The notes: a model not told the origin generated them from the sequence alone. Counted from the stretch's first letter, positions 1 through 37,228 are shown. The stretch is DNA of 64,000 nt from Entomortierella parvispora E1425 (GCA_020891255.1 BQFW01000010.1:1302001-1366000), one strand, 5' to 3'. Translations and numbers: made by a program.

Positions 1-1060
1 TAACTGGTCTTCGCCATCGAGCTGACGCCGCCCTTCGATTTTTTATGATGTGCCGCAGTGAAACCACACGCAGGATGAGATTGATCGACCTCTTTGGCCA
101 GAATGTTGCAAGTGCAGTGCGGAAAGATCAGGAGCAGGAGAGAAAATTCGTCCTTGGTGTGGTTTTGATGACAAGACAAGGAAAAATGAACAATAATGGC
201 AAGATCCGATATAATGTCGTGGTACGAGACACAGATGTGGAAGCGTGTCCTGTCGGTGCTCTAGCCTTTTATCTGCTTGAGTACTGGTTGGTAAGTTTGA
301 ACTTTTTGATTATGACGTACATTTTATGAGCTGGGTGAGGCTCTACCCCTTTCTAATCTGAATTATCTAGCCTACTTCCTCATCGGCTGCCCCTCCGCCT
401 AGAGTAGAAGATCACGACTGGGTCAACTATCACTTGTTGTCAAAGTCCACCACACGAACATCAGAGATACGATATGCCACACAGTACAAGCAGACACGCG
501 AGGTCCAGGATTATCTCAACATTGGTGTCAAAGGCAAAGCAACCCATCTCAGTAGACGACTGGGTGCTTTTTTGGCGCGGCTGACTGGAGCCACGCACGA
601 AGATATATCGAAACACGGCGGCTGGGGGACAAACCGACTCATCACCCATTACCTCGACGGCGTCGATGCATCTGTGGCGTTGCAAATGGCCGGATTTGAG
701 AATGGCCGTACGGAAAACTTTTGGCTGGAGCGTAATGTCATTCCAGACCTCGAGCTACAGCGCATGGTCTTCCCATTCATTGAACGTGCATGCTCAAATC
801 CTGAGGACAAAAAGCACTACGACCCTTTCTGGATCCAGACCATCGACAACATCATGCTGGATCGGAGCATATTCTACGGACGTCAAGAGGAAAATATTAA
901 GATCAAAAAAATCAAGAAAAGGGCTGCACGGAAAGTTCTCTCTGATGAGGCAATCTCGCGTCGACGGCATCTTTGTCTGCTTGCCCACTTGCGGAAAGTC
1001 ATTCTGCAGGACGCCGCCGTCTTTTTATTGGCCGAGAACAAATCATTCAACAAAAATTGA
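1..1060 (+). mobile_element. Crypton-type tyrosine recombinase (NDC10_II-like), 5' end outside the window; intron 291-370; C-terminus truncated or frameshifted
   Basis: The frame from nt 3 reads LRHRADAALRFFMMCRSETTRRMRLIDLF...GKMN...CPVGALAFY. A GTAAGT..TAG intron (291-370) joins it in frame to ...KATHLSRRLGA...GGWG...THYL...LRKVILQDAA. This supplies the YR catalytic set R (CRSE), K (GKMN), HxxR (HLSR), W (GGW) and Y (HYL). Confidence 0.85.
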
Positions 1061-1186
1061 ACCGTGAATTTTATGGAAATGTGACAAATATCGCGCATGC
1101 TACAGACGTGTCACGGATAGGAATAAAAGGAGATGTATCATACAATTATTGTGCCTTTCGAGAAAAAGTACAAAGAAAAATATTAG

Positions 1187-4100
1187 TTATTCTGTGGCCA
1201 ATTTTTGATTTGATATGAGCAGCAATGCATTTGAGCTTAGAATACTTACATAATTTGAGCTGAGACTCAATTCCTGCATGGCACCTGCTTCGGTGCACGA
1301 GGACTGTGATGGTTCCCCAGTCGAAGTCGATCTGGTGTTGGAAGAAAGCGACCAGGTGGGTCGCTTTGGGTCAAAGGGCGGCAGCGTGGCTCGGTCCTCT
1401 GGGTCCGATGTGACGAGAACATAGCCCGCCAATGCAATGTTGACCGCGGCATTTGTGTCGCGTCCTCGTTGGGTGTATCCCACCTTGTATGATTCGCAGT
1501 CAGGGTTGGTGCATTCGATAGCACCGTGGACACGAACCAATCTCATCTCCCCATCCTTCTTTCTCCGTGCTCGCGCTAAACGGACCAACTGGAAACAAAA
1601 TGGACAAGTTTGTGACGACTTGTGCTCGGGGGTCTTCGCGACTGGGGTGTACCTCATGTGCCTCTCCGGCACCTTATTCCCCCCCATTTTCGAGTGCCCC
1701 TTCAATCGTGACCCTACACCCAAACCTGCATCACCGTGTAGCATGAGCGGGATCACAACTGGTCTCGACTTTGGGCAAGCTTCGAGGTGTTGGAGGGACA
1801 TCCGTGGCCTCTCCGGGCTTGTTCGATCTAGCGTAGGTTCAGGTCGGTGATGTATACCACACTTGAGGCAAAATCCGTTGGTCTGAAGTCGGGGCGGGGC
1901 CGTTATCAGCAAAGAAGGTATTAGCGGAGACTGCAATGATGATGGTAGCAAGGATGCATCTGCAGTAACTAGACGGGCGAAGAAAAAAAATCCAATCAAT
2001 CTACAGCTGTGTGACATTTGACTAGCCCCTTTTCATTTTCTGTCAACTTACTGTTGGCCTGTCGGCTGAACGCCTTCCTCTCCTTCGCCGCAATACGATC
2101 ATAGGCGCGCCTTAGTCGTAATTCTTTGTAGTGTCGGAGACTCTGCATCTTCTTGCTGTTTTCGAATTTTCGAAGGTCTTTCCGTACCCTTCGTCGCAGC
2201 TCCTGGGCCTCCTCAATGGCATGTGAGGTGCTTGCTCGTGTGATGGAAGTATCAGCAAGCTTGGTGTATACTTCGTATATCGTCTCCGGCCCGGCCATCC
2301 CTGGGATTGTCGTTTCGGTGACCATCTTTGATCGTACTTGGGACTGTCTAGTCAACCCTCCATGATGTCGGATATTTGACACTTTGGTCTGATGTGCCGC
2401 GGGAAACCTCATCTGCTGAAGAGTAGCAGGAACATAGTCGGGCGGCTCAGGTTCAATACCCGCCAAGACATCAAACCTGTTCTTCATAGAGATGAGGGTG
2501 CTCTCGGGAACGGGGACAGTGTTGAAGAGGACGTGTGCCCCTGGATCCGTGCCTCCCGGCATCAATACCATCTGTCTCTTGGTGGGATCCAAGTTGTTGT
2601 CCTCAATTTCTGCCACCAACCCCTTGATATTTATCGACTCTGCCTTGTCGAGGCAACCAAGTCGACGGATTGTGGGATTTGAGGAGAATGGGCCGGCAGG
2701 AACAGAGGAGGATAGATTGACAGGGGCCGAGGAGGAAGAGCCGGCGGGAACCGCAGAAGACGAGCTGGCAGGGGAGCTGGCAGGTGCTGAAGAGGCCGAT
2801 GACGACGAGGATGTTGTGGAGGAGTAGTATTTGTTATGATCATACTTCTTTTGTCGTAGGTCTTTGATTTCCGCCCGCATACGCAATATTTCACGTTGAA
2901 CATCATGAAAATCATTACGCATTTTCTGCATGTTGGTCTTGAATTGGTCGGTCACCGATACCCGAGCATCCTGAAAATTGGACTTCAGGGTCTTGAGTTG
3001 CTTCTCAAGATTAGCTGCTTTCCTGTTTCGTCCTTGAAGGGCCTTTTCCTTTACTTTGATAGTATCGGTAAGGTCGTCTGCGATCTTTTTTGCCTGCGGT
3101 TTCGTCATTCCCTCCTTTTCTAGTTCCTGCTGCCTCAGTTGGCTGTAAGAAGGCTCCCGCTGCTTTTTCGATTTCTTCGTCTTAAGCCTCTTTTCCTTGA
3201 ACAGGTCCTTTGGGGCATCTTTTCGAATCCCATGTCCCATAATTCGTACAGTGTTTTTGTCGACAAACAGAAGCCTGTCGTGCACAAAATGAAATGTTAT
3301 GGTCATGTTCTTGGTAATGTTCGAATACAATGTCATTCACTCTTGGCACATTCCCTCTTACCGATCAGCAAATACAAGCCCGTATTTTTGGCAGATGGAA
3401 TGGATAACACTCATATCGAAGAAGGCGCTGAATATGACGGGAGCGTTTTTTACTCCAAGTGCCTGTGTTGAACACAAGGTTCCTTCGGCATCGAAAACAT
3501 CAAAATGCTCCTTCTTTGATGAACAAAGCGCCTCCCGAATCCCTGTTGATCCCAATGGGAGTGGATGAAGTTTTCCTGCAGACGATATCGGATAGAGCTT
3601 CCTCGTAAAATCGCCAAACCCCATCGCATGCAGTAGATGATTCGCCAAGTAAGCAAACGGCCCTGTCGCCAGGACATGTCGAGGGATGGTGCCTGATGTG
3701 GGCTTTGGTGTAAAGGGTCTCAGTGCATTGATGATTATCACTGCTGCATCGACCTCGTTCTCCTTAAACGTGTGGCTGTCGAAGAGATGTTGTCGTACAA
3801 TGTCCTTTGTGACCAACCCCGACAACTCGCCGATATCAAGTAATTTGCAGATCACTGTTTCCAAACCGCGTAGGTGTTTCGAGGTTGGCTCCGCCTTCCG
3901 CATTAACTCTAAAACAGGAATCATGTACAAGTCAGACACCACATAGTTTAAATACACAATGTCGGGGATTGGTATGACCTTACCTTTTTCAGCGGCTGCT
4001 GCATGGCAAGGGTCAGAGGTTCTCGCTACCCCCTTTCACCTCCTCCTCTTTGGCCTCTTCCTCCAGAGCCTCTCGGAAACCGTCGTCCTCATCCATCTCC

Positions 4101-6602
4101 TCATCGTCATAGTCGCCATCGTCATCCAACATAACCTCCTGGTGATCGACATCATCGGTAGAGCCCTGAGACTGCGTGCTGGCTATGTTGATGAGACGGA
4201 GCAATCTTTGGACACGGTCGACACGCGAATACAATGGTTCATTGTCCGTCGGATCCGTGAGAATCAAAGTTGATCCAGACCACTCATTGGTGCATTTGCG
4301 AACGGTCCGATCCAACTGATCCAATAAAGAGAAAAGTTTTTTCCTTCTTCTTGACTCCACCCGATTTCTGGGCTTTCGAGCGACCTTACTGTGCATTTTT
4401 TTTTCAGCCCATTTCTTTTTGTTTTGACGGTATCGCTCTTCGCCAAGGGGTCGCAAGTGAATTCTCACGAGATATCGAACCACTGCCCTTTTTATATCGC
4501 CGTAGATATTTCCGTTCCAGATATTGGCAATGTCGGTTGCAGCCGTTCTCAGCAGAGTGTTCAGAGTCTGCGATAATCCTGCTGGACATTCGGCGTTTTC
4601 TCGAAAGTTGTCGTCGTCACTGGCTGTCCTTTGGATACACTCGACCAACGTTATCCAATCCGCATGATTGTTCTCCTTCTCCGTCTTTCGCTTTTTCTCT
4701 GCTGGCTCCGAGTCCCTGTCTGGAGGAAGAAGCTTCTTGGCGAGGAATCCCAAGAAGTTCTGGCTGAAAAGATCGCGTAGATCAGGCACCACGTCGGCGT
4801 TCTTGTCCTCGGACTTCGTGATTTTCTTCAGGAGGTCGTGAGAGACCTTGGCAACCCTGACCACGGGATCTTTCTGAAGTTTAGGATCGCGGATCTGGAA
4901 GCCGGCAGGTAGAATGCCTGTGATATCTACATCCTCCCAATCGTCACTCAAACAGCCCCGAAATACCTGTAGTGGAAACAATGCTCTAAATGTTAGCAAG
5001 AGATTGATCGTGATACTGAAAACAAAACCGTTCGTCACAGAGCTTACCTCCACATGTGCCTTCATACATGCCGCCTGCACCTCTTCCATGTGGTCCGATA
5101 GAAGCGTCTGACTCTCACCGAGTAGATCGATGATTGTTTCCTTCGCATCGGCGTCAAACTCTTTGCGTAGGATCCTCTTTATAGGCAGATCGCACACACG
5201 TATCAGAGTCTCCTTGTCTAGGTCGTCCTCTTTCATTCTCGGCTCGACCTCGTTGGCGCTCCATTTCTCCTTCTTTTCGACAGCGTCACGCCAAAACATC
5301 TCGAAGTTGTCATTTACAAACACTTTGAAGATCTCCAACTGTCGATCGTCAAGTTTGTCCACAAAGTCCTTGACTGATATGCTGCCTTGTGGTCTTTTCA
5401 GATTTTGCTCCAAATCTCTAATGGCGTCTTGAAGAACATTCTGTGGTAATCGGGTTCGAGTAGATTCCTTTTCCAGCAGGCTGGCTCGGGAGGCTTCCAT
5501 TATATCTGCATCATCGACTTTCTTTTTTCTCTTGCTGGTCTTCCGGTCATCAATTTTTTTGACGGCCACCTCAACACCGCCTTTCACCACTTTCCTCAAG
5601 TGCCATGTACTATATGCATGACAAATATGATGTTAGGGGCCTGGGAATCGTTCAATAGGTTCATTTCCCTATACCAGTAAATACTTACCACTTTCCGAGG
5701 AAGCACCTTTCTGCATCCTCAAGATCAAATCCAATCTTGTCTTTTCTGTAGGTTTGGTGTCTTGCTCCAGGACAATACTTTGCAAGTGGTGTTCCTTGCG
5801 TCGACGGTAGACCGGCTGACAGGGCGGTGACTGGTGCGACAACCGGGGACACAAATACGGATAGCGGGGAGACTGACGGAGCGGAGGTTTCTGGTGCAAG
5901 GATTGATGGCGTAGAGACCGATGGCAGTAGCGATTGGATTACCTGCGGCGCAACATTTGAGACAACAAGTGGGCAGTAGGTCCGCATATGTTCAAAGGAA
6001 TCAGCGACGTGCACTAGTGCGACGATAGGCGCGAGAAATGGCTCTATGACAAGAGTAGAGGCGCGCGTGGAGACGACAACGATCTTGACTTGCAAAAGAT
6101 GAGCGAGCCTGCGCATAAGGAGCGTTGAAGGCGTCAGGCTGATAAAGTCATCGGCAGCAGCGTCTTTGAAGCCAAAAGCAGTTTGTCGGGTGCGGTTCAT
6201 AACGTCAGCAATAAGGGCGGAGAGGGTCTTATTGCACTCATCGATGACGAGCCCAAAACGCTGTTGAAGGACCTTCAGAGTCTTTTGAACATTTTCCGCC
6301 CCTGGAAGAGCGTTGCTTTGATCACGTAAGAGAAAGTCCACTCGTTGCTGCAACAACAGTGCTCCCTCTTGAGTCTGCTCAGACAATCGGCTATTTGCCT
6401 CCTCTACAAAATCATCATCATCGATGAACAAAATTGTCGTCTGAAAAGGGGAACATGAGTAATGTGTGGGCTTGCTGACGATAAGAGCAGACAGTCCAAA
6501 GTAAGATGCATCCAGTACCTTTTTCGAAGAGGCGCCAGAAACATCCAGCAAGTGAATCTCCATGTCCATGTCCATGTCCATGGAAACTTGGCTGCTCGAC
6601 AT
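1187..6602 (-). CDS. Giant multi-exon Fanzor1 (eukaryotic TnpB-family RuvC endonuclease), ~1,670 aa; exons ~6602-5689, 5609-5048, 4966-3984, 3908-3362, 3274-2052, 1968-1187; one apparent 1-nt frameshift near 4029-4033
   Basis: RuvC-I GGTDPG (Asp 2545-2547); HGDAGLGVGSRLKGHSKMGG motif; PEHKSSQTCPFC (Glu 1625-1627 plus first Zn pair); CTNPDC; RDTNAAVNI (Asp 1457-1459). Five co-oriented ORFs are joined by GT..AG introns whose phases match at every junction, apart from the one extra base in a G5 run in exon 3. Membership of exon 1 rests on splice phase only. Confidence 0.85.
1240..1340 (-). ncRNA. Candidate Fanzor omegaRNA scaffold overlapping the 3' end of the ORF
   Basis: Minus-strand hairpin CAGUCCUCGUGCACC-GAAGCA-GGUGCCAUGCAGGAAUUG (1306-1268) and an adjacent, partly overlapping UUGAG-UCUCAG-CUCAA hairpin, at the position where TnpB/Fanzor omegaRNAs are usually encoded. 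Boundaries are unknown. Confidence 0.4.
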
Positions 6603-6648
6603 CGCTTCTTAGTCAATGTCCATAAACTTGGAGATTAGGGACGGGTAT

Positions 6649-6763
6649 GGAGAGGATGCTAGAATGCAGAGAGGATGTTAGGGGTGCAGAAAGGACGGTT
6701 AGGGTGCAGAGAGGATGTTAGGGGCGCAGAGGGGATGTTAGGATGCAGAGAGGATGTTGGGGT
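6649..6763 (+). repeat. About six tandem 19-20 bp units, consensus GCAGAGAGGATGTTAGGGGT
   Basis: Units start at 6666, 6686, 6706, 6726 and 6745, plus a degenerate unit at ~6649. Three units contain TTAGGG. Confidence 0.9.
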
Positions 6764-6869
6764 GGGCGAAGAGAGGAAAGAGACGCGCGACCGCGGTTCG
6801 TGGCGTTTTCCATCCTTCACGTACTTCGCGTTGTCACGTGGAATTAGCCGAGACTCGGCAGAGATGTCG

Positions 6870-7824
6870 AATCAGATGGTCTTTCAGAGAACATCACCAT
6901 TCAATTGAATCTTCGGAAGCTACCCTCTCTTGCTGTTCACAATCGGAAAATCGGCGATTTATCTGACCCGCCACCATGGCAGCACAAATGAATGTGAGAT
7001 TCCTACCATCAAATTTGTGCGCACATTCGAGAGTCCGACTCGTCCACCTGGTGTGCGCTGACCGGCCGATGCCAAACCAAATGTCAAACCGTCCAAACAC
7101 TCCCCGGCTAATCTCTTCCAGATCTTGGAGGAGGACAACTATGAAGAAGCTATTGAAAGAGCATGGCGCATGGTGCGGAAGCATGGAGTAAGTTGACATT
7201 GTTGTCCATATGTTCGCTTATTTGACTTACCCCGAAACTCGTGCTTCAGGAAACAGCGGTGGTTCAGGATCGACAATCCAGCGAGCAACAGCATCACGGA
7301 AAGCGGCAGCGGTTGAGAGGATTTAATAGACAGTTGAGGATGGACAGATACAACCTCCAGGATTCATTACAAAGATTTTGTTTACGCAGAGACCTGCCCA
7401 ATATGCTCGAGTGCCTGATCCAGAGGAGCCTTTAGAGATCCCATGCAAACAAATAGACCTCGTGCAACAGTCAAATCAGACTGACCGTGCAGCGCCTTCA
7501 CTCACAGCAAAGCCACAAGGGGTCAACTACAACCACTACCACCATTGCCACCATTGCCACCACCACAACCTTTAGTATAAATACCCCGGACTTCATATCA
7601 ATAAACATCATTCAATCTTCGTGCTCTTCCCTTGGCCTTTACTATTGCATCCCAACAACCGCCACTTTCGTTCAAGCACAGCACTTGGTCCACAAATAGC
7701 GCAGGAAGATAGACGGCGATGGACTCAAGAAGAAGCAGATGGAGCTCAATTCAAACGGATTCGATTAAAGAAAGCCAGAGGACTTATCTCTTGTGGATGT
7801 GGAGAGCCTACGGATGGCTCTTAA
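6870..7824 (+). pseudogene. Possible decayed multi-exon gene of unknown family
   Basis: Protein-like stretches (LFQILEEDNYEEAIERAWRMVRKHG; EDRRRWTQEEADG) and a GTAAGT..CAG intron (~7188-7249), but stops in all frames. Confidence 0.25.
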
Positions 7825-7972
7825 ACTCCTACAGCTTGGTTTGAATGGCCTTGTCCATCTACAACAGGCCGCTCTCCCTCGCCCGCGAGAGAATATGGAA
7901 GACCCTGATCACGCAGATTCTGATTGACACGTTTATTGCTGGATCAAGTGTAAATAAAGTCAATGCTCCAAT

Positions 7973-9068
7973 CTATGCACCGAAATTCTCCTTCAGCCCT
8001 TCGGCGTCATAGCCACAGTGCGAAAACAAATTGATGGCTATAGTCCCTGTTTTTGCACATGCCTTGAATGCAAGGTCTAGAACGATTTCCGGTGCATTGG
8101 CATAAACAATATTTGCATTCTTTTCAATGAAGCGTTTGGTTAGAGAGAAACCAACCTCAATTGGGTTCAATCGGGGAGAATAAGGAGGAAGAAAAACAAG
8201 AAATGCCCTCCTACTTTCAATTGCTTCCCGGAATTCGCTATACATATGAATGCGAGCATTGTCTATAACTACAAAGGAGTTTGGTAGAGGGTAAGGTTGA
8301 AGGTGGGGTAGAATCTTGTCGACAAATGTATCATGAAACGATTCCCGCGTGAATGTTCCAGTAGTGAATTCCCAGGCAAGAAAACCTCTGTAGTTAAAAG
8401 CAGTCAGTGCAGAGACACGAACCCCCCGTGAGAAAGGAACATTTACAATAGCTGGCGTATTGACTGTGGAATAGGCGTACGACCTCAAAGCCGCTCGTCC
8501 GTCCTTGCTCGTCTCATCAATAAATCAATAAACACAAGCTGCTCTGGAAAGAGGTACAGTTCCTTCATATTTTGTCGAAACCACTCGATTTCCTGTGGGT
8601 TTGACTCGCGTGCTCGTTTCTGCAACTTTTTTCTTGTGAGATTCAGATCATTTCGTAAAGCACGGCAAATTGTGGAGACTGATGTATTCTGCAGATCTGG
8701 AATTCAGGTCTAAGCTCCTCTTGTAGCTCCTCAAGGAAGATGCAAGGATGGTGTTTGGTATACGACCCGACGAAAGTGAACACATCTGGTGGCCATCGAG
8801 AAGAGCTTTTGCGCGTATGTTCAATGTGAACGTTCCCTGTGTTGTTGAAATGTCCTGTCCATGTCCCAAAAAAAAAAAAAAAAAAAAAAAAAAAGAGTAA
8901 GAAAAAAAAAACGCGCAGGCGACGCGACTCAACAACGCTGACTTACGATACCATTTCGTGATCGTGTGTTGCGAAATGCCTAGCAACACTGCCACAGCAG
9001 ACCTGAGCAGGCCCATTTATATTGTAGAGCTTAATGGCGCACCAGCGAATATCGTCTGAAAAGGTCAT
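7973..9068 (-). mobile_element. Tc1/mariner-IS630 DD34E transposase pseudogene (one intron ~8857-8946, three frameshifts)
   Basis: Reconstructed as MTFSDDIRWCAIKL../LLGISQHTITKWYR|HF..HPCIFLEELQEEL../VSTICRALRNDLNLTRKKL..FID/ETSKD..VVIDNARIH..LPPYSPRLNPIE, with 34 residues between the second D and the E. Confidence 0.9.
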
Positions 9069-9297
9069 TGGGATGTGGGGTGATGTTTGAGAAGCAACAC
9101 GCACGTTGCAGTTTAAATACTGCAGTCCGAATAGCTGTTTCTCATCTTTTTACCCTTTCTGAATGCGTAAAAAGTTCGCAATTATACTACAAATAAACGA
9201 ATGCCAGGTAAAATACGAACATACCCATGCTTTCTCGAACTATACGCAGAAACTCCTTGTCAGTACGGTTCCAAAACGCACCCTACGCTTCCTGATA

Positions 9298-9695
9298 CAG
9301 TGCACGTCAGCTAGTCACAACAAAAATTCTTTGACCTGAGGATAAATCCCTACTAGTCCGCCAGTTTTATCCTGAATCCAAAAAACTCTGTGGTTTTGAA
9401 CGTTTCACAGCTCATCCTTTCAGAAAGCACAGAGTTTTCCCCTTTGGGATGCCTGTGGCCAAAGTTATTAATGTTGGCCGATCGAGAATTTGGCTAATCA
9501 AGGTATAGAATGCCGAATATATTTATTCCAGTGTATTTTAAAATTTATTAGCGATATCTCTTATGCATCCCCAGTGCGATCTCTAGCTGAGATGAGGAAA
9601 CGCAGTCACATTTATTACAGAGAACTTACAATTTTTTTTGAGATCAAAATTTCGGCGTGCCCTCAAAAATTGTTGTGACTAGGTGGCGTGCACTG
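9298..9695. mobile_element. 398-bp MITE of Tc1/mariner type with 26-bp TIRs and TA target-site duplication
   Basis: Left TA(9296-9297)+CAGTGCACGTCAGCTAGTCACAACAA; right TTGTTGTGACTAGGTGGCGTGCACTG+TA(9696-9697). 24 of 26 positions match; no internal ORF of note. Confidence 0.9.
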
Positions 9696-10606
9696 TATTT
9701 TATTTGTCCTCCGACCACGTTCACGTGCCCCGTGTTGTCATGTGTATTTAGCCTACCAAATTTCTAGGTTAACCGGAGTGACTGTTCATCGATACACATT
9801 TTATCATCATGATATCTGCAAGTCTAAAAGCACAATTAAAAAAAATGCATTTGTACTCAACGCCGCCCACCGATCGCCTACTGTACTGCAATCGCCACAG
9901 GATTATTGTTCGCTCCGTCAGACAGGAAGGTCATTCATGGTCAGGGTCAAACTATCACCGCTTTGCCCACTTCTGAAGGGTCTTTGAGAATGGCTGTTAG
10001 AGCATCCCAACGTTGGTCGCGTGGACAGGGAGCCAAAAGGGTATCTGGTCAATAAGCGTCACACTGGTGCCAAGCACCAGGATTACACAGACGGGGGTGG
10101 TAGAAAGAGATAAAGTGGGCGAGATGCTACAGCCCTTGGCTTATTTAGTCCTGTCCACCCTGCACAGGATCACCGACAAACTAAAAAAAAGCCCGGGGGT
10201 GGAGCGGAGCGTGCTGGTTGGCGGATCTAGCCTTCCCCAGGCTGTGGGACCACGGTTGCACGAAATCCCCCCAAAACGACGTGGCATCACATGACCTTCT
10301 GCGGCAGTCTGACTCTGACCAGACCCAGTCGCGCGAAAGTCCAAGTCTGGGCTGGCTGTGGAACAGGTGGAGAAAGGCAAGCGGCCGTTCGTTTTGCCAT
10401 CCCTTCACTTTTTTCTTTTTTTATATTCTTTCTGCTCTTCACTCTCCTTCTGCCCCCCACTCATTGTCTACTACAACACTCACTCACTCATCCACTCCCT
10501 TCCTTCCTTACTTGTACACTCCTCCTACATCATCCCTGACCTGTCCTTTTCTTCATTCGCTCCTTCTCGTCGTTCCATTCTCTCACGCACAAACTCTTAC
10601 CGAAAC

Positions 10607-29862: not shown

Positions 29863-31474
29863 ATGTCTTTCCGTCCCCCTCGCACCTGCTACACCTGCGG
29901 CCAACGTACGTATTGAAAGAATGATGATGAGCGAGACTTGATCCCTGTCCGTTCCTGTCTTGGGGACATGATCCCTTTCTTATGGAAGAGGGTCATGAAC
30001 TCGGATGTCGGCTCAGGAGAAGAGTCTCGTCTTTGGTGAAGTTGGTGGTGCAGTCGGAGGAGTAGTATGGAGGTGGTGAAGTTGTTGTTGTAGTTGGAGT
30101 TGGAGTTGGTGAGGTTGGTCTGTTGGTGGTAGTTGGATCTCCTCTCCCTTCTCTCTTCCCGTCCCATTCGCCGTTCGCCTGGATGGCCCGACACTCGCTC
30201 GACAATGACTCGCTCTTTGAGTGTGCTACGCCTTCGCCATCGCAGCAGGATCTCTCCAGCGGCTTGTCTTCTCGAGTTTCAAAAACGGTCTGAATCTGTT
30301 TCCGTCTTGGCGTCAGCTGCTCCACCTTCGTTCACTTGACCAGTGAACGTTGTCTGGCTTCTGAAGCGAGGATGGCAAGCAGCCTACGAAGTCTTTTGCA
30401 TATCGGGAATCCCGCAGCAGTCAGCCGACAGAGTCACCCAGTGGGCCTCCTCCTGACTGGAGTTTCAGGGTCTCTTGCCAGGTCTCTCTTGCTTGACTTC
30501 CCTCTATCATTCGAATATGGAAAAAAGTCCTTGTTCAATCAAATAAAGCGAGGCGAGGATGAGGAGGTGTATTTACCACATTTTACTCTAATCTAATGCC
30601 CCGCTTATCAGGCCTTCAGGAGGAGGAGAAGGAGGGAGAGTCGTTGCCGTAGTTGGAGGTGTTCTTGGGAGGTGTACTACGAACGATGATGATGATGATG
30701 TCCTGCCTTGCTGATCCATATCCTGTTCTCTTTCCTTTCTCTATACTTCTATGATCTGCGTTGCTCTCTTTTCACTTTCGAAATGTGCGTATTCTGATTT
30801 GCTCTGTCATGTCGTGAAACTTGTCTTGCCTGCTGTGCTCCCTATCCCCCGTGGTTCTTTTGCATGCATGCCTCATTGCTCATGATACACAGCTGGCCAC
30901 CAGGCCCGTGACTGCCAGTCCGCTGGTACCCCTCTCTGCTACAACTGCGGAGAGTCTGGTCACATCTCCCGCGACTGCACCGGTGAGCGCAAGGAGAAGT
31001 CCTGCTACAAGTGCAACCAGGTCGGTCACATCTCCCGCGACTGCCCCTCCGCCCCCGCTGAGGGTGCTGGCCCCGAGTGCTACAAGTGCGGCAAGGCCGG
31101 TCACATCTCCCGCAACTGCCCCGAGGGTGGTTTCCAGGGTGGTGAGCGTCCCCAGCGCACTTTCCGCGACAACAACAACCAGGGCAAGACCTGCTACACC
31201 TGCGGTGGTTTCGGCCACATGTCTCGCGACTGCAACCAGGGTGCCAAGTGCTACAACTGCGGCAACTCTGGCCACATCTCCCGCGAGTGCCCTGAGGAGC
31301 GCAAGGAGAAGGCTTGCTACAAGTGCAACGAGGTCGGCCACATCGTAAGTTCTTTATTCCATCTTTTTTTTGTCTTGATAATTTTGTTTTATTTTTATTT
31401 TTGTATCCGATATTGACCTCTCTCTCCTCTTCTTCCTTCCCTCCTAGTCCCGCGACTGCCCCCAGCAGGCTTAA
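29863..31474 (+). CDS. GIS2: Seven-CCHC zinc-knuckle RNA-binding protein (Gis2/Byr3/CNBP family); exon 1 29863-29905, 987-nt intron, exon 2 from 30893
   Basis: MSFRPPRTCYTCGQ|PGHQARDC followed by six more CxxCxxxGHxSRxC knuckles. Confidence 0.93.
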
Positions 31475-31942: not shown

Positions 31943-34900
31943 TCAAGAAGACTGCGACCGGCCAACGGCACTCCTTTGCTTCAGCAGCCGTAAGTTTGTC
32001 CTACTCAGATTTCGAACATCATTGATAATAGCGTTCGATAGAACAAGTGTATCTGGGGTTGACCGCCAGTTTAGGCGCACTTCAGCTTGCTCTCCATCGT
32101 GCACAACCTTCCATGAGTTAATAGACCTAGCACCATCGCCAACTACGAGACCCATGTCATCGCCAGTATGTTTCCAAGCAACGCTGTAGACGATATCCTG
32201 CAAATCGCTGTCCAATACAAGCAGACATTCTCCCGAATTCGCATCCCACAGCCGCACAGTCTTGTCCTCGCTTCCTGAGGCGATCCAGAGATCGTTAGGT
32301 GAGTAGGCAACTGAAGTGACATGCCAAGTATGACCCCTCAAGGACGATACAATTGTACCTATCCTTGTATCCCATATTATCACAGTTGTGTCATAACTGC
32401 CAGAGGCAATATGGTGGCCACTGGGTGAGTACGACACTGAAGTGACTCTATTGGTATGCCCTTCCAAAGTAAACGCAAGAGTGCCAGCCTCTGCATCCCA
32501 AAGTCGAACGGTGTTGTCCGCACTGCTCGATGCAATCTGGAGGCCATTAGGTGAGTACGCCACGGACATAACACTGTTGGTGTGGTCACTCAAGGATATG
32601 AAGGCGCCGGTCTTTGGATTCCATAGTCGTACTGTCTGGTCCCAGCTCCCGGAGGCAATCTGGTGGCCGCTGGGTGAAATTGCCACAGACGTGACTTTGT
32701 CAAGATGACCCTCCAATGAGGAGATAAAAGCGCCAGTGTGTGCATCCCACAGACGCACCGTCTTGTCGTAACTACCCGAGGCGAGCTGGTGACCGCTGGG
32801 TGAGTACGCAACAGAAGTAACCTTGTGATCGTGGCCTCTCATTAATGAGATTTGCTCCCCAGTTTTGGCATTCCAGAGACGTATGCTGTTGTCCCAACTG
32901 CCTGAGGCGATCTGCAGGCTGTTGGGTGAGAATGCCAAAGAAGCGACACTATGGGTATGGCCATTTGTAGAAGAGGCGAGAGCGCTAGTGTGTGCATCCC
33001 AGAGTCGTACAGTCCAGTCGAAACTTCCCGAGGCGATCAGGCGACCGCAGGGGGAATAAGACACAGAGGTTATGCCATTGGTGTGGCCGCTCAAGGTAGA
33101 GAGAGGCGTGCCTGTCTGTGCATCCCAGAGTCTCACTGTTTTGTCCGTACTTCCAGAGGCGATCTGGTGTCCATTGGGAGAGTATGCCACCGAAGTGACT
33201 CTGCCGGTATGGCCACTCAATGCAAGGATAAAAGCGCCAGTCTGCGCATTCCACAGTCTCACAGTCTTGTCATAACTGCCTGAAGCGATCTGGTGGCCAA
33301 TGGGCGAATACGCCACAGAAGTGACCCTCTCCGAATGTCCCTTCAAGGAAAAGGTAAGATCTTCTGTCTTCGTATCCCACAGTCGTACTAGCCAGTCATA
33401 GCAGCCTGAGGCGATCTGGCAGCCACTTGGTGAATATGCCACCGAACTGACAAAGCTACTGGCATCAAAGGACGAAACAGGCAGGCCAGTTTGTGTATTC
33501 CACAGTCGCACGTTCTTGTCCTCGCTTCCTGAGGCAATACGACAGCCGTTGGGAGAGTACGCCAAGGAAGTGACTCTGGCATTATGGCCATTTAAGGAAA
33601 AGTGAACGGCGCGGGTCTGTGCATCCCAGAGTTCAACGGTATGACCACTAGCTGAGGCGGTCTGGTGGTCATTGGGTGAGTGTGCGATAGCCGTGAAGTC
33701 GCTTGTGTTCCATGGAAGGACCTCCTTCATCCATGTTGCTGTATCGTACTTGAGACTTTGGCCACTTTTAAGACCAACATCCAAGTGTTTCCCATCTGGT
33801 GAGAACACACAATACTGCACGACTCTCAGCACCTTGAGACACGGATACTCGCCAAACGTTACTCCATCCATAGTGGAATGACTCAAGTTAGCCTGGTGCA
33901 ACCAGACATTTCGAAGGACGGTGTTACTCAAATCCGCGTTTTGAAGCTTAGCCGAATCAAAGTTACCACCGCTTAGATCGGCACCAGGGACCCGAATGCC
34001 TCTCAAATCTGCACCATTAAACTGTTTTCCAGCTCGAACCAAGATTGTGATCGCATTGGATGATGCATGACGGAAGGACGGTTCAAACTTGGAGCGCTGG
34101 ATAAGTTCATCGAGATGGCCCTTGAATTTGATATCGCAGCGGACACGTTCAGCAAGGAACTGGAGAATGGCTGGCTTCTTGCTAAGCGTCTGTCGACTCA
34201 ACGGGTGATCACTAGAGGAGACAGAGTCCGCAGCATGGGACGAGTGATCTGTGGAATGGAACAATGGCAGTCCTTTCTTGGGGTCGTATATCGAAAGAGC
34301 GTAGAAGTATTCCAGAATAGATGAATGACTGAATTTGAAAGTATCCATGCTCCCAGTTGAATATCCCTTGCCACTGGTCTGATCTGGGTTGTCTGGAGTA
34401 CAAGTGCGGCGGATCAATTGACATGCCTCCATCAGCAGTTGGGTCCTAGGTTCGATACCAAAAAAATCCCGCTTCCATGACTCCTTGTCCGCTATACTCC
34501 AATATTCCACGGAATTGTTACCGTCTTGCTTGTCAAAGATCGCGTTCGCGAGTCGCTTTGAGAAATCGATACCACGTTCGATGAAGTTGGGCCCCTCTAT
34601 TTCTTGGAAGACCGCAAGGCGATTGGAATCCATCTTGATTCTGGATCGCCGTTCTATCAGTCGCTTCTGCTCGTTCCTGTAATGCAAACCAACAAACTCG
34701 TCGTAGAGCTCAACACGTGTCATTTGACTGGTCGTTCCGGCGACTACAGGAAGAATCTCCAAGATCATGCTGAGCATGAATGGATTCTTGATAAGATCCA
34801 TGACATGGGTGATTTTTTTGAGTCGTTCTAAGTACTGGTCCTTTGTCCATCGCGCTCTGTTGCCGTTGGTCTCTGTGTTCTCTGTGTACTTTGAGATGTA

Positions 34901-37228
34901 CTCTTCGATCTGATCATCATTCAAGGGAGCAATGAAGGCCTCCGTTAGGAGTTCAGTCGAGGACAGACCGTAACAGGCCAGTGCATCCTGCTGGGGTGTG
35001 AAATAGGAACGATACTCTGGACTAAGGTATTGTGTCCGACAGGAGACGATCATTTTAGTCCTCCATTGATTCAGTTCGCTAAACCGGCTGTTGGTGTAAA
35101 GGTTGGATCGACTTTGGCTCTCGTCGTATCCATCGCAGATCAGAATGAATTCGCGCGTACGCAGATCAGCCATGTTTGATTCCGAGAACACCTTCAGACT
35201 CTTCAGATGCTGCTCTGTCAAATTATCTTCCGAGTGTCGAACCGCCTTCAGGTCGATGAGGAGTGGAATTCGACCACCCTGTCTGTAAGAATTCCACAAA
35301 TCCTGCTCCAGTATCGAGTTAAAGGTCGACTTTCCTGTGCCAGAGTCGCCAAGAATAAGCATGACAAGCCCATTACCTCCCAAAAATTGGTGAACGCGCT
35401 CCAGCAAAGGTTTTGGATTCTCATCCAAGGCTTGCAGGTTTGACTTTGACATGGTTGGAATATAAACAGTATGTCGACTGTATGCTTCCAACCGATGGTA
35501 TCGGAGACGTTCAAGAATAAGCTCGAGATCAGGGTTATCGTGAGCCCCTCTCAGTAGTGAAGATGAAGTCGCTAAACAATGGCAGTTTATCGCCACACAT
35601 GGTTGTCGAAGTCGTTGCTCTCTCCCAAGTCCTGCATATTCACACTCGCTGACCCGGTCACGCGCTCGCTGTTGGACCATGTCACTGTTGAGATTACTTG
35701 ATGGACCGGTATTTGGGAGCTCTGAGATGTGGCGGAGGAGTGTAAGAATCCATCTGCAGACGTCTAGGTCATGGTCTGATGCTGAGTTACTCTTGAACAA
35801 TTCTCCAAGAAATTCTACTGCCTCCCTACGCGGAGTTACATCCCACAGTGGGTCGACGGCTATCGTGCCAAGAATTGTGCAGACCCCCCACTGGAAAAAT
35901 GAGTCGTGACGGCAAGCACTGTTGTTGATCAGCTGGTTGAACTCGACCAGTCGACCTTCGATTGCCATGGCTTCCGCCTTCCAAACATCATGGATCCATG
36001 GATTACTATCCTCTGATGCAAAATTTTGCTGCAGACATTTCACGAGTCCTCGTCCACTCACGGCTATGGCACGAGCTGCCTCTGGTATTCCACTAAAGTC
36101 CAGTTGGATGGCAGCTGATCCTCTTAGCAATCCTTCCAAAAGGCCAATGACGTTGCGAGTTACTCCTTGTCTCACTGTCTCATCATCGGGGACTAGCCGC
36201 AAGGTCCGGTACGCGTACTCGACTTGGTATTTTACCATTGGATCCGCGTGCTTCCTCAAATTTGACAGAATCTCGAGCAAAGGCTGGTGTTCACGTTCGC
36301 GGTTCATGTTCACTCCACTTTCCACCATTATAACGAGCACCTTGGAGATGGCAGTCGTCAGATGGATGATGTACTCTGTGTCCCGCTGAGTGCGCAGATG
36401 GTCTCGAACGGTATGAAAGATCTTAGTGAGCACGTTTGCTTGAAGATGGAGCGGAGGGGCACATTCGACCAAGCTGATAAGTCCTTCAACGAGGTGGATG
36501 TTGGGATCAGTATCTTTCTCGAGTTCGAAGAGGAAGCGATTGATCAAGGCTCGGTAAAGGTCCTTTCCCAGAACAGGCCCAAGGAGAATGATCTCGCGAA
36601 TGGCATCCAGTGGTTTGCTCGGGAGAGCGATAAACGTATCTACCATCCGGTTCATCAATTGCTGAATGTATCCCTTTTCAAGCACACGGCCTTCCATTTC
36701 CTGAATCCACTTGTGAGAAGAAGCGGGTTCGTCCATGCTGGTGTCTATGTCGGCGGATGCTGAATCAGACGTTCTACCGGCAGTCCACGCGAGAAGCTTG
36801 GCACAAGCAACTAGCTGAGCTGTTGTCTCTATGCGTCCTCCAGCTTTTGGTAATGGAGTACCTTCCTTTATTTTGGAGGCATTCGCTGAGAAGATATTGG
36901 ACGGTACAGTCTTAACGTTCCAAATGACGGGTGGGGAGTATTCCGTATTGCTGATGTCTCTAGAAGGGCTTGGCACTCCAAATGATGTACTTGGCGATGA
37001 GCTGGACGTGGATCCCCCAGTTGCTGTCGAGGCTGGTGTCGACTTCGGCCTGGTCTTTGGTACCGTCAGGGTTGATGGTGGAGTTCCTGATTTTGAAACA
37101 GCATGCGGGGCTCCTACTGATATTGGCAGTTTGATGATACCAGAAAGAGCGCTTGCCAAGCTTTTTTTTGAAGCAGATGCGCTGCTATCCCAGGCGTGGG
37201 GCTTCGTCAGACTAGGCGACTTGGTCAT
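31943..37228 (-). CDS. NLR-like protein: Arm-like N-terminus, NACHT NTPase, pentapeptide repeats, ~14 WD40 repeats; intronless, 1,761 aa
   Basis: Walker A GDSGTGKS, Walker B LICDGYDE, GADLRGIRVPGADLSGG..ADLSN pentapeptides, and repeated GH..VTSVAYSP.G.QIASGS.DKTVRLWD units. Confidence 0.95.
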   Translation of the reverse strand: MTKSPSLTKPHAWDSSASASKKSLASALSGIIKLPISVGAPHAVSKSGTPPSTLTVPKTRPKSTPASTATGGSTSSSSPSTSFGVPSPSRDISNTEYSPPVIWNVKTVPSNIFSANASKIKEGTPLPKAGGRIETTAQLVACAKLLAWTAGRTSDSASADIDTSMDEPASSHKWIQEMEGRVLEKGYIQQLMNRMVDTFIALPSKPLDAIREIILLGPVLGKDLYRALINRFLFELEKDTDPNIHLVEGLISLVECAPPLHLQANVLTKIFHTVRDHLRTQRDTEYIIHLTTAISKVLVIMVESGVNMNREREHQPLLEILSNLRKHADPMVKYQVEYAYRTLRLVPDDETVRQGVTRNVIGLLEGLLRGSAAIQLDFSGIPEAARAIAVSGRGLVKCLQQNFASEDSNPWIHDVWKAEAMAIEGRLVEFNQLINNSACRHDSFFQWGVCTILGTIAVDPLWDVTPRREAVEFLGELFKSNSASDHDLDVCRWILTLLRHISELPNTGPSSNLNSDMVQQRARDRVSECEYAGLGREQRLRQPCVAINCHCLATSSSLLRGAHDNPDLELILERLRYHRLEAYSRHTVYIPTMSKSNLQALDENPKPLLERVHQFLGGNGLVMLILGDSGTGKSTFNSILEQDLWNSYRQGGRIPLLIDLKAVRHSEDNLTEQHLKSLKVFSESNMADLRTREFILICDGYDESQSRSNLYTNSRFSELNQWRTKMIVSCRTQYLSPEYRSYFTPQQDALACYGLSSTELLTEAFIAPLNDDQIEEYISKYTENTETNGNRARWTKDQYLERLKKITHVMDLIKNPFMLSMILEILPVVAGTTSQMTRVELYDEFVGLHYRNEQKRLIERRSRIKMDSNRLAVFQEIEGPNFIERGIDFSKRLANAIFDKQDGNNSVEYWSIADKESWKRDFFGIEPRTQLLMEACQLIRRTCTPDNPDQTSGKGYSTGSMDTFKFSHSSILEYFYALSIYDPKKGLPLFHSTDHSSHAADSVSSSDHPLSRQTLSKKPAILQFLAERVRCDIKFKGHLDELIQRSKFEPSFRHASSNAITILVRAGKQFNGADLRGIRVPGADLSGGNFDSAKLQNADLSNTVLRNVWLHQANLSHSTMDGVTFGEYPCLKVLRVVQYCVFSPDGKHLDVGLKSGQSLKYDTATWMKEVLPWNTSDFTAIAHSPNDHQTASASGHTVELWDAQTRAVHFSLNGHNARVTSLAYSPNGCRIASGSEDKNVRLWNTQTGLPVSSFDASSFVSSVAYSPSGCQIASGCYDWLVRLWDTKTEDLTFSLKGHSERVTSVAYSPIGHQIASGSYDKTVRLWNAQTGAFILALSGHTGRVTSVAYSPNGHQIASGSTDKTVRLWDAQTGTPLSTLSGHTNGITSVSYSPCGRLIASGSFDWTVRLWDAHTSALASSTNGHTHSVASLAFSPNSLQIASGSWDNSIRLWNAKTGEQISLMRGHDHKVTSVAYSPSGHQLASGSYDKTVRLWDAHTGAFISSLEGHLDKVTSVAISPSGHQIASGSWDQTVRLWNPKTGAFISLSDHTNSVMSVAYSPNGLQIASSSADNTVRLWDAEAGTLAFTLEGHTNRVTSVSYSPSGHHIASGSYDTTVIIWDTRIGTIVSSLRGHTWHVTSVAYSPNDLWIASGSEDKTVRLWDANSGECLLVLDSDLQDIVYSVAWKHTGDDMGLVVGDGARSINSWKVVHDGEQAEVRLNWRSTPDTLVLSNAIINDVRNLSRTNLRLLKQRSAVGRSQSS

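Follow-up and report, generated by a model that had tools for sequence, protein, structure and literature searches.

We analysed a window of 64,000 nt from the fungus Entomortierella parvispora, a member of the Mortierellaceae (GCA_020891255.1, contig BQFW01000010.1:1302001-1366000); an ORF of 1,761 aa located elsewhere in the window is identical at every residue to a protein of this contig, and the coordinates follow from the offset of this match. Positions 9837-1146 of this window, on the minus strand, probably correspond to one ~8.7-kb copy of a Tc1/mariner-like transposon, in which a decayed DDE transposase is followed by an eight-exon giant Fanzor1-type gene. The family to which it belongs is a real Fanzor1 family, unusual in its size and domain content and carried by a recently active Tc1/mariner-like transposon. 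This transposon family is multi-copy in E. parvispora: the copy in the window is a broken member and an intact sister copy is found in the same genome. An earlier reading made from the DNA alone (hereafter the sequence-only reading) had proposed a Fanzor1 nuclease at this place, and fold, motifs and transposon context agree with this identity.

The limits of the element are given by two paralogous copies, at loci L003 and L004, which match window positions 9826-1146 and lose similarity exactly at both ends. Over 8,143 nt, L003 and L004 share 99.57% identity while their flanks are unrelated, which indicates that the family moved very recently. Their ends read TTATTGTGC...GCACAATAA, i.e. a 9-nt inverted repeat located at the exact termini, and TA can be read at both junctions. 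A piggyBac-type TTAA duplication was ruled out by reading the flanks. The stop codon of the Fanzor gene is constituted by the last three bases of the element. Furthermore, a transposase remnant precedes the Fanzor gene, in the same orientation, and matches the Pfam domains DDE_3 (expect value E 2.5e-19) and HTH_23 (E 0.015). Fanzor1 genes reside in eukaryotic transposons, with introns and signals resembling nuclear localisation signals (NLS); here, the gene is found in a DDE_3 element and has seven GT-AG introns. The element and its gene comprise:

1146..9837, minus strand: Tc1/mariner-like transposon copy of ~8.69 kb, from which paralogous copies diverge exactly at both ends
9829..9837, minus strand: left terminal inverted repeat, TAATTGTGC in the window and TTATTGTGC in L003 and L004
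1146..1154, minus strand: right terminal inverted repeat GCACAATAA, which is also exon 8 (Ala-Gln-stop)
7973..9016, minus strand: Tc1/mariner-type transposase remnant (DDE_3 open reading frame (ORF) 7973-8488, HTH-like ORF 8648-9016)
1146..6602, minus strand: Fanzor1 gene in eight exons, map transferred from the intact paralogue P0134 at L003
6602-6519, 6440-5689, 5609-5048, 4966-3984, 3908-3362, 3274-2052, 1968-1250 and 1154-1146, minus strand: Fanzor1 exons
6518-6441, 5688-5610, 5047-4967, 3983-3909, 3361-3275, 2051-1969 and 1249-1155, minus strand: GT-AG introns

The copies also differ by their internal content. Stretches of about 410 nt (window 9284-9697) and 200 nt (window 7443-7649) are absent from L003 and L004, and near its left end the window copy is devoid of about 18 nt present in both. 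Moreover, another copy, L005, harbors in its transposase region an insertion of about 5.4 kb (~996-6371) with a gene encoding a hAT dimerisation domain, i.e. a nested transposon.

Five minus-strand ORFs (1187-2017, 1996-3336, 3358-3957, 4013-5599 and 5685-6602) are found in the window at the very positions that had been reported for them. An exhaustive HMMER search with the ORF 4013-5599 retrieved 132 relatives, many of them with 1,066-1,823 aa, that are hypothetical proteins of E. parvispora, Mortierella alpina and Mortierella sp. Word-indexed protein searches gave only 1, 2 and 7 matches, probably because Ser-rich and acidic words filled the candidate list. Long gene models with N2, M and RuvC parts are present in three Mortierella assemblies. 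The intact paralogue, P0134 (GJJ70720.1, 1,626 aa), is encoded at L003 (BQFW01000004.1:1565670-1571135), the DNA of which is identical to the window copy at 98% over the gene and 97% over the whole element. When threaded onto its own DNA, P0134 is encoded by eight exons separated by seven GT-AG introns (78, 79, 81, 75, 94, 84 and 94 nt). In the window, the corresponding gene starts with the ATG at 6602 and ends with the TAA at 1148-1146. Two of the introns sit in frame within ORFs, and the terminal intron excises the ORF tail down to 1187, the final exon having only 9 nt. Hence, the six exons and ~1,670 aa deduced by the sequence-only reading came close to the structure of the paralogue but were wrong in detail, since it has eight exons and 1,626 aa. 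Its description of the gene as hidden does not hold, since paralogues are already in GenBank as hypothetical proteins of 1,626 aa and similar lengths. An annotated protein of 1,625 aa is also encoded directly downstream of the L004 Fanzor copy (L004 14104-19290); it has no similarity to P0134, and its near-equal length is therefore coincidental.

The assignment of the protein to Fanzor1 relies on its C-terminal part. The C-terminal motifs quoted by the sequence-only reading were all recovered in the window at their expected positions:

1436..2553, minus strand: RuvC/TNB nuclease core, from motifs, structure and alignments
2553-2539, minus strand: GTDPG, with the RuvC-I D
1738-1724, minus strand: HGDAG, with the Fanzor1 G
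1630-1613, minus strand: PEHKSS, with the alternative Glu, followed by CPFC (to 1595)
1606-1496, minus strand: zinc ribbon CPFC and CTNPDC (CTNPDC at 1513-1496)
1462-1436, minus strand: RDTNAAVNI, with the RuvC-III D

In P0134 numbering, the predicted catalytic triad is D1220, E1499 and D1555. The last two align residue by residue with E541 and D606 of SpuFz1, whose catalytic residues are D383/E541/D606 according to its cryo-electron microscopy structure (PMC10432273). The second catalytic Glu thus lies just before the zinc finger, as had been noticed: E1499 matches SpuFz1 E541. Bao and Jurka described a Gly and a Glu that are conserved specifically in Fanzor1, G500 and E536 in SPu-1-1p, and a motif D-X(125,275)-[TS][TS]-X-X-[C4 zinc finger]-X(5,50)-RD (PMC3627910). 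The spacing between G1463 and E1499 is 36, identical to the one between G500 and E536, and both residues are invariant in eight relatives. The motif is complete and in order in P0134 (D1220 ... S1502 S1503 Q T C1506xxC ... C1537xxxxC ... R1554 D1555). D, G, E, the zinc-ligand cysteines and RD vary little or not at all among the relatives.

An AlphaFold2 model of P0134 residues 800-1626 was obtained from a family alignment of 21 sequences (predicted local distance difference test score, pLDDT, of 73). Foldseek gave SpuFz1 as its best match in the PDB (E 7e-5, probability 1.00), followed by lower matches to GtFz1, PpFz1, Cas12 proteins, Fanzor2 and Cas12f. In VIA-align, residues 375-787 of the model superpose on residues 362-633 of SpuFz1, the RuvC/TNB part, with a Z of 14.8 over 256 residues; the Z values are 13.0 for PpFz1, 10.4 for Fanzor2 and about 10 for TnpB. 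Modelling of the C-terminus as a RuvC/TNB fold had been set beforehand as a test of the sequence-only reading, and this is the fold obtained, SpuFz1 being the best match. Moreover, when a profile of eight family members was compared with the whole PDB, SpuFz1 was the sole match (E 0.0065). Fold, motifs and transposon context therefore support the family protein as a Fanzor1-type TnpB relative. It is likely to be a Fanzor1-type endonuclease, and is predicted to be an RNA-guided nuclease. A family-conserved CxxC..HH...H...C motif is also found within RuvC, between RuvC-I and GDAG (window 1847-1876, minus strand; P0134 ~1409-1450), and may constitute an extra zinc-binding insertion.

Comparison with known systems shows what is shared and what is particular to this family. 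Besides the fold, SpuFz1 of Spizellomyces punctatus (PDB 8GKH, 9CEU-9CEZ) has in common with it the alternative Glu directly before the first CxxC (DEYKTS...CPRC in SpuFz1), the second zinc knuckle VHG..CTNP(D/N)C and the RD motif. However, SpuFz1 has 638 residues versus 1,626 in the giant family, sequence similarity is detectable just around the zinc ribbon (the profile match given above), and the N lobe of SpuFz1 (1-361) is matched by neither giant-family model. PpFz1 of Parasitella parasitica (PDB 9CF0, 9CF1) maps in a collinear manner, with its residues 111-237 on 418-614 (Z 8.4) and its residues 238-843 on 1048-1583 (Z 13.0); both are larger-than-usual Fz1 with insertions (PMC11423790). 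The giant family differs from it by about 430 extra residues (615-1047) between the matched parts, by an additional N-terminal domain of about 260 residues with its linker, and by the RuvC insertion CxxC..HH..H..C in contrast to the cyclophilin-binding FRI loop of PpFz1. The element itself resembles the Mariner/Tc1 elements that carry Fanzor1 (PGv-1, PUl-1; PMC3627910), with Fanzor1 downstream of a Mariner-type transposase, short terminal inverted repeats, TA-type flanks, the motif D...[ST][ST]xxC4...RD and the Fanzor1-specific G and E. Unlike in these elements, the protein is far larger, the inverted repeat has just 9 nt and the D-to-SS distance is 281 versus 125-275. As for TnpB of ISDra2 and its omegaRNA (OMEGA), the giant family has a RuvC-TNB core (Z of about 10 with TnpB chains), a nuclease gene that abuts the right end of the transposon and a conserved, structured sequence that overlaps the ORF at its 3' end. 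In contrast to TnpB, it is eukaryotic, contains introns, is about four times larger, has a relocated RuvC-II Glu, is hosted by a Tc1/mariner-like and not an IS200/IS605 element, and has a conserved intron between the hairpins and the end of the element.

The protein departs from the family by its size, which is a descriptive rather than a defining feature of Fanzor1. Characterised Fanzor1 nucleases have about 600-850 residues. Most Fz1 proteins have 600-700 aa (PMC11423790) and Fanzor1 can reach about 800 aa (PMC10711439). With 1,626 aa, the intact family protein lies outside the typical range and is about 2.5 times the usual size; it is indeed oversized as had been proposed, the factor being larger than the twofold then given. 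Two modules of its N-terminal half are located as follows:

5949..6602, minus strand: N-terminal alpha/beta domain N1 (P0134 ~20-190), pLDDT >90, OTU-like topology devoid of a conserved Cys
4520..5191, minus strand: REC-like module (P0134 418-614), from the VIA-align match to PpFz1 111-237

The model of residues 1-850 has a pLDDT of 78.6. The N1 domain (~20-190), conserved in all Mortierella-type relatives, is followed by a Pro/Ser-rich linker, a helical REC-like region (~265-730) with basic NLS-like clusters, an acidic linker, a further conserved region with a long coiled coil (~800-1130), a Ser-rich linker and, finally, the RuvC domain with its zinc-ribbon TNB. The clusters found in P0134 read KRKKK, KKRK and RRRKK and may serve in nuclear import. 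Residues 615-1047 (~430 residues) have no counterpart in PpFz1. Matches of N1 to OTU folds recur in three libraries (Foldseek E >1, VIA Z 4.4, Atlas TM 0.44); an OTU cysteine protease was rejected, since these matches are sub-threshold and no conserved Cys is found in the family alignment. DUF8286, proposed by a protein atlas (score 0.5), was set aside as the Pfam scan gave no match, and a PDB sequence-profile search with the N-terminal 850 residues returned nothing real. In AlphaFold DB, uncharacterised proteins of 1,112-1,154 aa have the same REC-like and RuvC layout. Hence, the proposal of a lineage-specific subfamily does not extend to this layout, and only the first domain of about 190 residues looks special to the group. 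Our literature search found no paper on Fanzors this large, nor on Fanzors in Mortierella.

It is likely that the upstream ORFs and the nuclease ORFs form a single gene, as had been proposed: collinearity, conservation of introns, structure and the existence of proteins with both halves all argue for it. Eight diverged loci (L001, L006-L009 and L010-L012; protein identity of 25-57%), which come from Logan assemblies, soil metagenomes and other Mortierella-type assemblies, are collinear with P0134 on one strand. L006-L009 cover it from residue 28 to ~1610 and the others cover large parts of that span. In L001 (35-55% protein identity), the junctions J2, J4, J5 and J6 coincide with those of E. 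parvispora in position and phase, each with a GT-AG intron of 79-97 nt. The critical junction J4, at which the upstream half meets the nuclease half, is found again in L007 and, in phase 1, in L009; L006 is devoid of the J6 intron and its reading frame runs straight through. Residues 418-614 superpose on PpFz1 111-237 with a Z of 8.4 (rmsd, i.e. root-mean-square deviation, of 3.0 over 126 residues), the next match having a Z of 4.4. Since PpFz1 111-237 matches the N-terminal model and PpFz1 238-843 the C-terminal one, a solved Fanzor1 maps collinearly across the disputed junction. Furthermore, residues 1-520 of the AlphaFold DB protein A0A168HZD0 (1,154 aa) match the N-terminal model and residues 456-1115 the C-terminal one (E 1.9e-26), and two further entries likewise match both halves.

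Alternatively, predictors could have fused two genes, a conserved upstream gene (exons 1-4, ~790 aa) and a normal-sized Fanzor1 (exons 5-8, ~830 aa). The acidic, disordered linker at the end of exon 4 and relatives on record with the nuclease half only, P0143 (686 aa) and P0144 (608 aa), would be consistent with such a fusion. However, P0143 is merely the longest ORF of a collinear locus, the position and phase 1 of J4 are conserved in the window family, L001, L007 and L009, and direct reading reveals no in-frame ATG in exon 5 upstream of the donor. In addition, a fold like that of a Fanzor N-terminus lies within exons 3-4, single AlphaFold DB proteins contain both halves and one open frame crosses all eight exons of the intact paralogue. 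Two separate genes are thus improbable.

The single giant gene is intact at L003 only among the four copies compared, L004 and L005 having two frameshifts each. Relative to L003, the window copy displays three exonic indels: a gain of 6 nt, a loss of 3 nt and a 5-nt deletion near 4021. The last one is the lesion:

4013..4025, minus strand: inactivating 5-nt deletion in exon 4 (~4021) and premature TGA at 4015-4013, from paralogue comparison

The deleted nucleotides read TGCGA in the paralogues (GAGAATGCGACCTCTG versus GAGAACCTCTG in the window). A sequencing slip in a G run was ruled out as the origin of the frame change at 4016-4035, since the paralogues show that 5 nt were deleted outside any homopolymer. 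With the conserved splice sites, the spliced coding sequence of the window has 4,879 nt and meets a stop after 783 codons, ahead of all nuclease residues. As this deletion shifts the frame and leads to a premature stop, the window copy is probably dead and would encode only an N-terminal fragment of 783 residues devoid of the nuclease. Therefore, the sequence-only reading was correct about the D-E-D codons, which are intact, and not about the gene that carries them, which is frameshifted; neither can the conserved intron join ORF 4013-5599 to ORF 3358-3957 as it had assumed, because of the frameshift in exon 4. The divergence from L003 is equal in exons (1.7%) and in introns (1.6%), as would be expected if transposon copies decay neutrally.

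The copy would still be functional if a weak donor located at 4029 (GTAGCG) were spliced to the usual acceptor, which would remove 17 residues from the acidic linker and give a protein of 1,610 aa with all catalytic residues. This splice yields a single open frame of 1,610 codons to the normal stop, the skipped residues fall in a low-confidence linker and the window copy has no other exonic frameshift or stop. Nevertheless, the window copy has kept intact the strong conserved donor GTAAGG at 3983, which splicing would favour over the poor donor GTAGCG, no relative uses a donor at position 4029 and the equal divergence of exons and introns fits neutral decay, so that we consider a functional window copy unlikely.

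The 3' end of the gene may also encode the guide RNA. The following features are found there:

1255..1335, minus strand: candidate omegaRNA scaffold made of three consecutive hairpins, with DNA blocks invariant in eight lineages
1335-1317, minus strand: hairpin 1, CCAG...CTGG
1304-1272, minus strand: hairpin 2, a longer imperfect stem
1270-1255, minus strand: hairpin 3, TTGAG...CTCAA, with compensatory changes
1155..1249, minus strand: conserved terminal intron of 95 nt (GTAAGT ... CTAAT ... AAAG), which separates the hairpins from the final 9 nt of the element

Disorder is predicted for the ~40 C-terminal residues of the protein, yet the DNA that encodes them has blocks that are invariant in eight lineages, in particular CCAG-N(7-14)-CTGG. 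When the lineages are folded separately, the same three hairpins are obtained in a row. In an alignment of five sequences, the pairing of the third stem is kept by compensatory changes at three positions, the arms TTGAG, TTGGG, TTGGAC or TTGAAC being matched by CTCAA, CCCAA, GTCCAA or GTTCAA. The distant loci L010-L012 also have a hairpin at the site of the third stem, with a different stem sequence in each. A search of the 3' region against Rfam gave no match. The hairpins are located about 100 nt from the end of the element, with the intron in between; downstream of them come the GTAAGT donor, the branch-like block CTAAT, the AAAG acceptor and 9 nt to the end of the element. In L006 (~6028-6142), the Fanzor stop lies about 12 nt upstream of the GTAAGT donor, and both this donor and the GAAAGGCA block by the acceptor are kept. 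Since the stop precedes the donor, their conservation is not explained by coding, and the terminal intron of L006 appears to be kept for a non-coding reason.

Since the Fanzor stop coincides with the end of the element, the arrangement is the one expected of a TnpB or Fanzor with a guide read from the flank. By analogy with these systems, an omegaRNA produced from the 3' end of the gene would read into the flanking DNA and would guide the nuclease to matching sites adjacent to a target-adjacent motif (TAM), for instance the emptied donor site; such guided cutting would favour the retention or homing of the element. The clade could even be viewed as a distinct, undescribed 'mega-Fanzor' class, in which the degenerate OTU-like domain and the ~430-residue insertion would add a second activity or regulation and splicing of the terminal intron would make the guide RNA, thereby deciding between mRNA and omegaRNA. 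Once this intron is removed, 9 nt would separate the scaffold of three hairpins from the transposon end, and the scaffold would lie beside the guide derived from the flank. We hold this extension to be speculative and rather unlikely.

It is highly improbable that the family is instead a domesticated or catalytically retired Fanzor derivative, whose N-terminal additions would carry the real function and whose 3' blocks would be transposase-binding or splice signals and not guide RNA: the transposase is decayed in L003 and the sequences of the conserved blocks, GTAAGT and CTAAT, are those of ordinary splice signals, but the relatives show no variation at D, E, D, the zinc ligands or the Fanzor1 G, two copies that are 99.57% identical with different flanks attest very recent mobility, the pairing of the third hairpin is kept by compensatory changes in several lineages, and the gene stops exactly where the transposon does, as is the case in TnpB and Fanzor elements.

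Several points nevertheless weigh against the reading that we prefer, i.e. a Tc1/mariner-like transposon carrying a giant Fanzor1-type gene. The terminal inverted repeat of 9 nt is very short, the flanking TA is inseparable from it and the transposase reading frame is broken in L003, the copy examined. The D-to-[ST][ST] spacer of 281 exceeds by six the published maximum of 275 (range 125-275). Pfam gave only a sub-threshold Cas12f1-like TNB match (E 2.9e-4, last ORF) and coiled-coil noise. The Z of 8.4 of the REC match is just moderately over the noise level quoted for the tool. Finally, the evidence for a single protein consists of gene predictions, conserved splice phases and predicted structures; a search for sequencing runs listed no RNA run from E. 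parvispora, and the runs of relatives aligned to the gene gave only low-complexity scraps of 37-43 nt.

These data reveal a natural Fanzor1 family with proteins of 1,626 residues and confidently folded extra domains, recently mobile as attested by two copies that are 99.6% identical, and with an intact copy available in a culturable fungus. It makes it possible to examine what RNA-guided nucleases acquired in eukaryotes once they had left bacteria, such as chromatin access, regulation or partner recruitment, and prompts one to ask how a guide RNA can come from a 3' end that contains an intron. In terms of annotation, it also shows that many 'hypothetical proteins' of 1,100-1,800 aa in fungi of the Mortierella type are Fanzors missed by Pfam.

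A Crypton-like tyrosine-recombinase remnant (Pfam NDC10_II) is located at window 45-1060, on the plus strand, tail to tail with the Fanzor element. The second Fanzor copy L005 adjoins the same Crypton-like sequence, 99.2% identical to window 1-1044, the NDC10_II matches being at window 45-1060 (plus strand) and at L005 14498-15543 (E 2e-7 and 3e-6). At the L005 junction, 67 nt between two CACA repeats are absent and an insertion of 1.47 kb is present. The presence of a Crypton-like neighbour at two Fanzor loci could result from a composite element, a duplication or guide-directed homing into a Crypton-like element.

Elsewhere in the window, diverged 126-nt tandem repeats (32231-33632, minus strand; 60-71% identity) are found within a gene of the WD40/ARM type encoding 1,761 aa (31943-37228). 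Furthermore, CCHC zinc-knuckle coding units (CYNCG..GHISRDC) are repeated at 30937-31344, as in a CNBP/GIS2-like gene.

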